Source: Utricularia gibba
Taxonomy: Eukaryota > Plantae > Magnoliophyta
NCBI GenBank assembly: GCA_002189035.1
Contig: CM007991.1
Location: 2,728,001-2,792,000, forward strand
Direction: 5' to 3'
Length of the DNA: 64,000 nt
Of the stretch, positions 15,430-17,156 are shown piece by piece. Position 1 is the stretch's first letter; each line of letters opens with the position of its first letter. The notes beneath the pieces were generated by a model. The model saw nothing but the letters and a program-made list of their open reading frames with translations, made no database searches and had not been told where the DNA came from. The position numbers were made by a program, and so were the translations under genes.

Positions 15430-17156
15430 TCAGGGAACTGGGCCAATGTCTTTGAAGTAATCATGCTCCAGGGCCAGTCCGGCTGTGATTCTTTTACTAG
15501 GGTCTAAACGCAGCATTCTCTGTAGGAACATCGGCCGTTAGGTGTCTCAAGTGAAAATCAGGGAAACAAAGATGTGCGTGCTGCTTACACCAAGTAGGTC
15601 TAGTCCAGCTGCATCAAGATATGGGACAACAGAGGCCAAGTCCTGAACATCGGCAAGCTTCGTTAGTCAGTCAATAACAAGGATGAAATGGGAGTAGAAG
15701 ATGAGATAAACATGGCATCACCATGGGTGGCCATTTAGGGAAAGATGATTTGAAGTCGCGGAGGGAAGACACTCCGGGCCATGTAGCTTCAGTTGGGGTG
15801 CCAACAACTCTTCATGGTGGAAGGTTAAAAGGATTTTATGGAAAGGAACGTGATGAACTTGAACTTAGAGATAGTAGAATCACCTAAAGATTTTGAAGAG
15901 TTCATCAATCTCGGATTCACCAGGAAATAAAGGTCGTCTGATTACCATCTCGGCAAATATACAGCCAACGGACCACATATCTACAGGGGTAGAATAATAC
16001 CGTGATCCCAGTAGAATCTCCGGAGCCCTGTACCACAAAGTCACAACCTGCATCGTGCCTCAAACTACAGAATGAGAAGTACAAATGTGCACAGTTTGTA
16101 CAACGATGTGAACCTAGAAGTATTTTACCTCATGAGTAAATGTCTTGAGAGGAAAGCCAAACGCCCTTGCTAGTCCAAAGTCAGCAAGCTTCAACAAATT
16201 TTTTCGCCTATCGATGAGCAAGTTTTGGGGCTTCAGATCTCGATGGAGGACAAAATGAGAATGGCAATAGGCTATACCACGAAGAATCTGATAGAGAAAC
16301 ATCTGCAGTGGAGAAAATTGTGTAAAAAATTGCAGAACATTCATTGTGTTCAAACAGAAAAGTGCCTAAGAGGATGTTGTTTCGCTACGCATCACATCAC
16401 GCCATGGCAACTGAAAACTTTCGTATAGATGGGTTTCCAAGTGGGGCTAATGGTGTATGAAATGATAAAGCTATGAAATCATTTTTCATTAGAAGCTATC
16501 TAACGGTGTTAATCTAGGATCCAGAAAGCAGAAATATATCCTGCACGCCTAAGTTAGCAGCAGGTACAGCCATAGTGTCATGTTTTGCAACGTTGATATG
16601 CCAAAGAGAGTGTACCTACTTTGACAAGACGAGGATCCTGGGAGAATTCTGGGCAGGTGTCTATGTGTTTCTTCAAATCCAAATCTAAATACTCCAATAT
16701 CAGATACAACCGCCTCTCAGTATATACCACATCATACAACCTGTGAGAAAATACGATGACAATATGTACTGGATGGATATAAGACAAGCTATCACGTAGA
16801 TTTCAGAGCTGTAGACAAAAAAATTTTGATGCCTCTAGCAGATTAATAGGCAATTCGCGATGTATAAGTAGTTCCTACATACTTGACGATATTCATATGC
16901 CGCATATGCTTCAATAGAGAAATCTCTCTGATGGCTGTGCTTGGCACTCCCTCATTCTCCTGATTTATTCGTATTTTTTTCATAGCAATAGTTTCATTGG
17001 TTTGACGATCACGAGCCTTATAGACTACTCCATACGTCCCTTCTCCAATCTTCTCAACCTTTTCATACTACATAGCACAAACACTTGCTTTAAAAATGCA
17101 AGCAGAAACAGATATTGCAATCATTAGATTGAGTCATTAGTCGTTACCTGATCCAT
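15430..17156 (-). CDS. CDKA: Cyclin-dependent kinase A, diverged tandem copy 2 (8 exons, 294 aa)
   Basis: Same exon structure and phases as copy 1, with no stops or frameshifts seen. GEGTYG, K33, PSTAIRE, HRD, DFG and T161 are retained. About 31 amino-acid differences from copy 1 by hand comparison. Confidence 0.95.

Follow-up and report, generated by a model that had tools for sequence, protein, structure and literature searches.

Two genes encoding CDKA kinases of the PSTAIRE type were found in tandem in the 64,000-nucleotide stretch of Utricularia gibba DNA that was analysed (contig CM007991.1; hereafter the window), where they are arranged head-to-tail, ~3.6 kb apart, on the minus strand. 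Among plant cell-cycle kinases CDKA alone is indispensable, and its sequence has hardly changed. When the models of both genes were rebuilt from the window, either copy was found to consist of 8 exons of 9, 185, 121, 174, 164, 88, 54 and 90 nt, with GT-AG ends at 7 of 7 introns and an 885 nt coding sequence (CDS) that is translated into 294 amino acids (aa) with no internal stop. The CDKA genes of Sesamum and Andrographis have 8 exons of exactly these lengths. Copy 2 as a disrupted pseudogene was considered, and its intact CDS and the GT-AG ends of all its introns speak against this. The locus includes the following features.

11890-13512, minus strand: CDS of copy 1, the canonical CDKA (rebuilt model)
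13504-13512, 13228-13412, 13000-13120, 12584-12757, 12343-12506, 12181-12268, 12048-12101 and 11890-11979, minus strand: exons of copy 1 (rebuilt model)
13547-14162, minus strand: 5'UTR intron of copy 1, ~616 nt, with the joint 13544/14163 (cut +2) in RNA run X2
near 14163-14320, minus strand: non-coding first exon of copy 1, upstream of the 5'UTR intron
15407-17899, minus strand: duplicated unit of copy 2, which pairs with 11868-14319 of copy 1
15430-17156, minus strand: CDS of copy 2, the CDKA paralog (rebuilt and translated model)
17148-17156, 16883-17067, 16620-16740, 16129-16302, 15884-16047, 15722-15809, 15589-15642 and 15430-15519, minus strand: exons of copy 2, stop included

The limits of the duplicated unit were taken from a blastn comparison of its two halves and a repeat search. 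It includes the non-coding first exon, and the copies cease to be similar ~740 bp 5' of the ATG; the 1.1 kb spacer (14320-15406) and everything farther upstream are unique. Upstream of copy 2 (to ~17899), counterparts of the 5'UTR intron acceptor and of the non-coding exon can likewise be recognised.

Copy 2 has a common intergenic region with a leucine-rich repeat (LRR) receptor kinase gene on the plus strand (19175-22254), which was seen as two long overlapping open reading frames (ORFs; 19175-20209 and 20107-22254). Its kinase domain contains an odd stretch, which may be intronic or reflect a frameshift or an error of assembly. Beyond this gene on the minus strand are a gene for a pentatricopeptide repeat (PPR) protein (22246-24233), split over the ORFs 23328-24233 and 22246-23217 and ending in an E/E+-like motif (PGCSWIE), and an ORF of 390 aa (24560-25732) whose product has an extreme content of P, G, Q, Y and S and represents all or part of a prion-like protein of low complexity.

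Identity and divergence of copy 2

Database searches with copy 2 were run exon by exon, and the joined 294-aa model was used for translation, alignment, dN/dS and the tree. The Pkinase family (PF00069) was matched by exons 2, 4 and 5 (E = 1e-15, 5e-19 and 9e-15, respectively), for which the nearest solved structures were those of human CDK2/CDK1; exon 3 had no match among solved structures at E = 1e-6. Like Arabidopsis CDKA;1 (cdc2a; the orthologue of Cdk1/Cdk2/Cdc28), which is also of 294 aa, copy 2 has an exact PSTAIRE motif (residues 45-51), and it retains GEGTYG with T14/Y15, K33, HRD, DFG, R151 and T161, so that the intactness of T14/Y15, K33, PSTAIRE, HRD, DFG and T161 stated in an initial annotation of this DNA was confirmed by direct check. 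R50 and R126 are present, read inside the PSTAIRE and HRDLKPQN strings, and the whole 12-residue PSTAIRE helix is unchanged. As the helix C motif is PSTAIRE, assignment of copy 2 to the plant B-type CDKs (PPTALRE/PPTTLRE) was ruled out. The gatekeeper residue in copy 2 is L80, while F80 is invariant in 76 plant CDKAs and the gatekeeper of human and yeast Cdk1/2 is likewise Phe (PMC5037886, Table 1). The first Asp of GDSEID is also changed (D207E), giving GESEID. On its predicted protein, copy 2 agrees with the PSTAIRE CDKAs in every testable feature except these two, the Phe gatekeeper being a conserved trait of PSTAIRE CDKs and no formal criterion.

The two copies differ at 75 nucleotides and at 31 of 294 residues. 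The residues, given as copy 1 to copy 2, are L25Q, L32M, L37I, E38N, D41N, E57H, Q59R, G61M, H67Y, H71Y, S72T, K74R, F80L, M91I, R122F, T139K, S141L, I155F, V157L, H180Y, V187M, T199I, D207E, D226A and P235R, followed by six in the C-terminal part (L252V, D255Y, R279G, M280L, E285D and L292P). These are exactly the 25 named and six C-terminal differences that had been noted before the models were rebuilt.

The direction of change was examined in a set of 76 plant CDKAs of 285-300 aa, drawn from 120 that were recovered by a search with a profile built from the exons and two database CDKAs. A clearly derived state was found in copy 2 at 23 sites and in copy 1 at one (L252V), a significant asymmetry (chi-square 20.2, p = 7e-6). 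The other 7 differences are ambiguous, and in 6 of them the copy 2 residue is absent from all other CDKAs in the set; about 29 of the 31 substitutions are derived in copy 2. Across all 31 sites, the residue in copy 2 was never found in the other CDKAs at 25. The high conservation of CDKA on which the initial annotation relied was upheld, with 174 of 294 columns invariant across the 76 proteins. However, its description of CDKA as single-copy held for Arabidopsis only, as many of the plants recovered in the profile search have several CDKA proteins. At columns that are invariant in this sample, which extends from Marchantia to angiosperms, copy 2 carries 11 changes (L32M, L37I, D41N, E57H, H71Y, F80L, M91I, I155F, D207E, P235R and R279G).

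In a maximum-likelihood protein tree of 41 rows, built from CDKA sequences only with other CDK classes absent as outgroup, copy 1 and copy 2 were sisters (100/99) on a common stem to the other 39 plant CDKAs, which together with their same 8-exon structure bears out the earlier view of copy 2 as a tandem CDKA paralog. The terminal branch of copy 1 had a length of 0, and that of copy 2 (0.23) was the longest of all. The nearest relative of copy 1 was the Sesamum CDKA (92.5% identical), then those of Scutellaria, Andrographis, Nicotiana and Antirrhinum, which places the plant in the Lamiales, while copy 2 was 83-85% identical to the CDKAs of Lamiales and Solanaceae. No orthologue of the copy 2 type was found among the 120 plant CDKAs, in which proteins from the same genome were not listed, and none of these was nearer to copy 2 than to copy 1. 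A search of representative sequences with exon 2 of copy 2 gave a best identity of 87%, the level of a canonical CDKA, and nothing nearer. The same best value was obtained in an exon 2 word search that covered fragments of 34-107 aa only and returned nothing nearer copy 2, which is weak evidence of absence. A literature search on Utricularia together with CDKA or CDK duplication found nothing relevant on the copy 2 paralog. Copy 2 is regarded as a lineage-specific, asymmetrically diverging CDKA paralog.

The changes are not evenly spread along the protein. Residues 25-74 carry 12 of the 31 (p = 0.002), and these include a local cluster in one short segment of exon 2.

16894-16908, minus strand: codons 57-61 of copy 2, with 6 nucleotide changes in 15 nt (E57H, Q59R, G61M)

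In this segment GAGATGCAGCATGGA of copy 1 corresponds to CATATGCGGCATATG in copy 2, which is the palindrome CATATG twice. The 6 changes may have arisen in one templated or multi-nucleotide mutation, and somewhat fewer changes are therefore independent than the count suggests. Codons changed at more than one nucleotide in copy 2 include 38, 57, 61 and 122.

In CDK2, the cyclin interface includes the 40s loop (residues 33-41, L37 and E40 among them), the 70s loop (71-74) and the start of the T-loop, and H71 and T72 of the 70s loop face H296 of cyclin A (PMC4463590; bioRxiv 10.1101/2024.06.03.596235). That these three regions face the cyclin and are changed in copy 2 had been proposed by analogy, and this was supported, with 8 of 33 a-priori cyclin-facing positions changed (L37I, E38N, D41N, H71Y, S72T, K74R, I155F and V157L) compared with 23 of 261 positions elsewhere (p = 0.013, in a test framed after the data had been seen). 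Relaxed constraint on partner binding predicts such clustering at the interface as well as adaptation does. A cyclin contact at R122 was sought in published CDK structural work and no confirmation was found.

The designation of F80 as the gatekeeper of the ATP pocket agrees with studies of CDKA;1, in which an F80G form largely rescues the null mutant and is active in planta with reduced activity (PMC5037886). As F80G is active, F80L should be compatible with catalysis. At the position of L32M, human Cdk1 also carries M (PMC5037886, Table 1).

For altered CKS-contact positions, the remaining proposal, support is weak. The direct CKS1 contacts of CDK2 are E208, I209, F213, K237, F240, P241 and W243 (PMC11316097), and all 7 are unchanged in copy 2. 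The position of D207E corresponds to D206 of CDK2, which contacts CDC25A and not CKS1 (PMC11316097), and P235R immediately precedes the DYK motif (PMC11316097). With the direct contacts kept, D207E at a CDC25A contact and P235R outside DYK, a remodelled CKS surface is a weak claim.

Selection, gene conversion and expression

Pairwise comparison of copy 1 and copy 2 (Nei-Gojobori) gave dN of 0.055, dS of 0.226 and omega of 0.24. Branch-specific values were obtained with a custom-written codon-model likelihood on the tree ((copy 1, copy 2), Sesamum, Andrographis). Omega was 0.48-0.52 on the copy 2 branch against a background of 0.03, and the one-ratio model was rejected (p = 8e-14). With free branch lengths, omega = 1 for copy 2 was not rejected (p = 0.15). 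However, dS between the outgroup CDSs (Sesamum, Andrographis and a Logan transcript) and all other sequences is 1.06-1.88 or saturated, and as synonymous changes are not reliably polarised by outgroups at dS > 1, a variant of the test with equal neutral branch lengths for both copies was therefore used. In this variant the omega of copy 2 was 0.56 and omega = 1 was rejected (p = 0.017), so that the branch dN/dS check proposed earlier settled on ~0.5, with a value near 1 rejected or not depending on the treatment of branches. Omega > 1 was found in no window and on no branch, and the maximum in the sliding-window analysis was 0.65, at codons 26-75.

Further signs of constraint come from what copy 2 has been spared. 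The invariant columns take fewer changes than expected (11 of 31, against 59%; p = 0.007). In neutral simulations of copy 2, the frame stayed free of stops in 2-4.5% of runs, with 2-4 stops expected. From the 11 indel events in ~520 nt of introns 1-4, ~7 exon indels are predicted on one branch, and 0 were seen (P = 0.001). As there are no stops or exon indels, the tests for omega < 1 are as described, and invariant sites are depleted in changes, the reading frame was protected for most of the history of copy 2. Constraint on copy 2 appears from these comparisons to be roughly twenty-fold weaker than on copy 1 and still present.

Similarity between the copies is markedly uneven in the introns. 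Introns 1-4 are only 59-70% identical and of unequal lengths, whereas for introns 5-7 identity is 91-96% and the lengths nearly match. Gene conversion between the tandem copies is the simplest reading of the 3' tract, and a probable one.

15542-15915, minus strand: probable gene-conversion tract of ~370 bp, paired with ~12001-12374, from the 3' end of exon 5 to intron 7

Exons 6 and 7 differ at 8 of 142 nt within the tract, a divergence close to that of the introns (~7%). On these tiny numbers there is thus no sign of constraint in the most recent period, and the recent evolution of copy 2 may have been neutral. Three of the 4 amino-acid changes within the tract are in copy 2.

RNA data were available as Logan contigs from 4 runs (X1-X4) of the same species label in 3 studies, which were compared with positions 11800-17300 of the window at 97% likeness; the runs were taken as RNA because the contigs are spliced. 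For copy 1, the contigs include joints across introns 1, 2, 3, 5, 6 and 7 and the 5'UTR intron, the joint of intron 4 not being listed. For copy 2, spliced copy-specific contigs over introns 2 and 3 were found in X1 and X2 and a copy-specific exon 5 contig in X3, the three runs representing two studies. Expression, which had been suggested as a check on the new gene, was therefore found, and the spliced contigs specific to copy 2 speak against an untranscribed pseudogene. Contig depth was 2.9-4.6 for copy 2 and 8-20 for copy 1. In run X4 no copy 2 contig was present at 97% likeness, while copy 1 reached a depth of 33-60, and X4 may come from a different accession, one that lacks copy 2, does not express it or carries a more diverged form. 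Copy 2 is expressed, apparently at a lower and variable level, contig depth being a poor measure. Several SNPs relative to the window were seen in X4 in copy 1 and its 5'UTR (12447-13719).

One splice donor of copy 2 was seen at two positions among the contigs.

16614-16623, minus strand: exon 3 donor region of copy 2, CAAA/GTAG/GTAC, with the canonical donor after 16620

Through a single C-to-T difference from copy 1, which has GC there, copy 2 has another GT 4 nt 3' of its exon 3 donor. The X1 contig has the joint 16302/16616, which uses this copy 2-specific donor, and the X2 contig uses the canonical 16620, thus 1 of the 2 contigs across intron 3 of copy 2 is frame-shifted. As translated, the transcript from the alternative donor would be shifted by +4 and reach a stop after 137 codons.

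Explanations for the divergence of copy 2

The best explanation, in which confidence is about evenly balanced, is that copy 2 is an expressed and still-coding CDKA paralog under strongly relaxed though not absent constraint, probably an active kinase in which the cyclin periphery and the ATP pocket have drifted or shifted. Such a history would begin with a lineage-specific tandem duplication of CDKA, the plant homologue of Cdk1/Cdk2, after which nearly all protein change would have fallen on copy 2 because purifying selection there dropped about twenty-fold without vanishing. From its sequence we infer kinase activity for copy 2, and a changed partner preference is plausible. The unchanged PSTAIRE helix would bind a cyclin, phosphorylation of T161 would switch the kinase on and that of T14/Y15 would switch it off, and CKS would dock via the unchanged contact residues. 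The altered 40s loop, helix C end, 70s loop and T-loop start, together with the Leu gatekeeper, would most likely result in a weaker or shifted cyclin preference and a slightly altered ATP pocket. However, the 11 substitutions at invariant sites (R122F, H71Y, P235R and R279G being listed as examples) could equally disable folding or cyclin binding.

The main rival, which is possible but rather unlikely, is that copy 2 is a decaying duplicate, once constrained, perhaps for dosage, and now drifting towards a pseudogene, with the changes at the interface reflecting lost constraint. The failure to reject omega = 1 under free branch lengths (p = 0.15) is consistent with decay, as is exon divergence that matches intron divergence in the conversion tract, and so are the low depth of copy 2 and its absence in X4, the new exon 3 donor with its frameshifted transcript, the truncated promoter (~740 bp upstream of the ATG duplicated), and the 11 changes at invariant sites along with residues unseen elsewhere at 25 of 31 sites. 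However, a neutral copy would be expected to have gathered 2-4 stops and ~7 indels where copy 2 has 0 stops and 0 exon indels, and omega below 1 under equal branches (p = 0.017), the depletion of changes at invariant sites (p = 0.007), the untouched catalytic motifs and PSTAIRE helix, and continued splicing and expression all argue for a gene that is still maintained. Adaptive neofunctionalisation, in which positive selection on the cyclin-facing loops, the T-loop start and the gatekeeper provided a private cyclin or escape from inhibitors of the KRP/SIM type, is improbable. It would account for the concentration of 12 of 31 changes in residues 25-74 (p = 0.002) and of changes at 8 of 33 cyclin-facing positions (p = 0.013), for the omega peak of 0.65 at codons 26-75 and for the multi-nucleotide changes at codons 38, 57, 61 and 122, and a precedent exists in the CDK1 paralogs of Oikopleura (PMC8832800). 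However, omega exceeds 1 in no window and on no branch, the enrichment at the interface is equally expected from relaxed binding constraint and was tested after the data had been seen, the 6 changes in codons 57-61 may be one mutational event, the core CKS contacts are unchanged (PMC11316097), and expression is low. The initial annotation had offered a new cell-cycle kinase variant with relaxed selection as the alternative; the intact paralog stands, no evidence of positive selection was found (omega ~0.5, not above 1), and relaxed constraint explains the data at least equally well.

It is very improbable that a specialised copy 2 has co-evolved with a lineage-specific cyclin as a private pair, comparable to a pair known from Oikopleura, serving a particular tissue or cell-cycle variant. 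Least probable is a non-catalytic decoy, in which copy 2 would compete with copy 1 for cyclins, CKS or CDK inhibitors by titrating them; the CKS contacts and the PSTAIRE helix are kept while other surfaces have changed (PMC11316097) and low expression fits a modulator, but copy 2 has kept every catalytic residue, and a pure decoy would have no need of them.

Comparison with other duplicated kinases

Copy 2 departs from other plant CDKAs in having L80 in place of an invariant Phe, GESEID in place of GDSEID, omega of ~0.5 rather than ~0.03, and low expression. It shares with CDK1a-e of Oikopleura the duplication of a master cell-cycle CDK with retention of the catalytic residues, and in both cases divergence is found in the ATP site or hinge, the activation segment, the helix C-beta 4 loop and the cyclin interface (PMC8832800). 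Within the helix C-beta 4 loop, the Oikopleura CDK1 paralogs have P61 (PMC8832800) and copy 2 has G61M. However, the PSTAIRE motif itself is changed in Oikopleura and is untouched in copy 2, and positive selection and separate functions have been shown experimentally there (PMC8832800), whereas copy 2 has omega of ~0.5. One Oikopleura paralog, CDK1d, pairs with a co-evolved cyclin B, cyclin Ba (PMC8832800). If a private partner of copy 2 proves true, copy 2 would represent the first example in plants of a PSTAIRE CDK whose role has been divided. Copy 2 also provides a natural set of 31 substitutions that could show which surfaces set specificity for cyclins, inhibitors and ATP analogues.

Among asymmetric young paralogs, the fast-evolving copy loses expression (e.g. 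PMC3906896). The present pair is similar, with copy 1 frozen and highly expressed and copy 2 evolving fast, with lower and patchier expression and a partial promoter. It differs in that the parent CDKA is among the most conserved plant proteins, and because of this even relaxed divergence reaches residues that land plants otherwise keep without variation. If copy 2 is only decaying, this would be ordinary asymmetric divergence of paralogs, yet one that shows which CDKA residues fail first under relaxed constraint.
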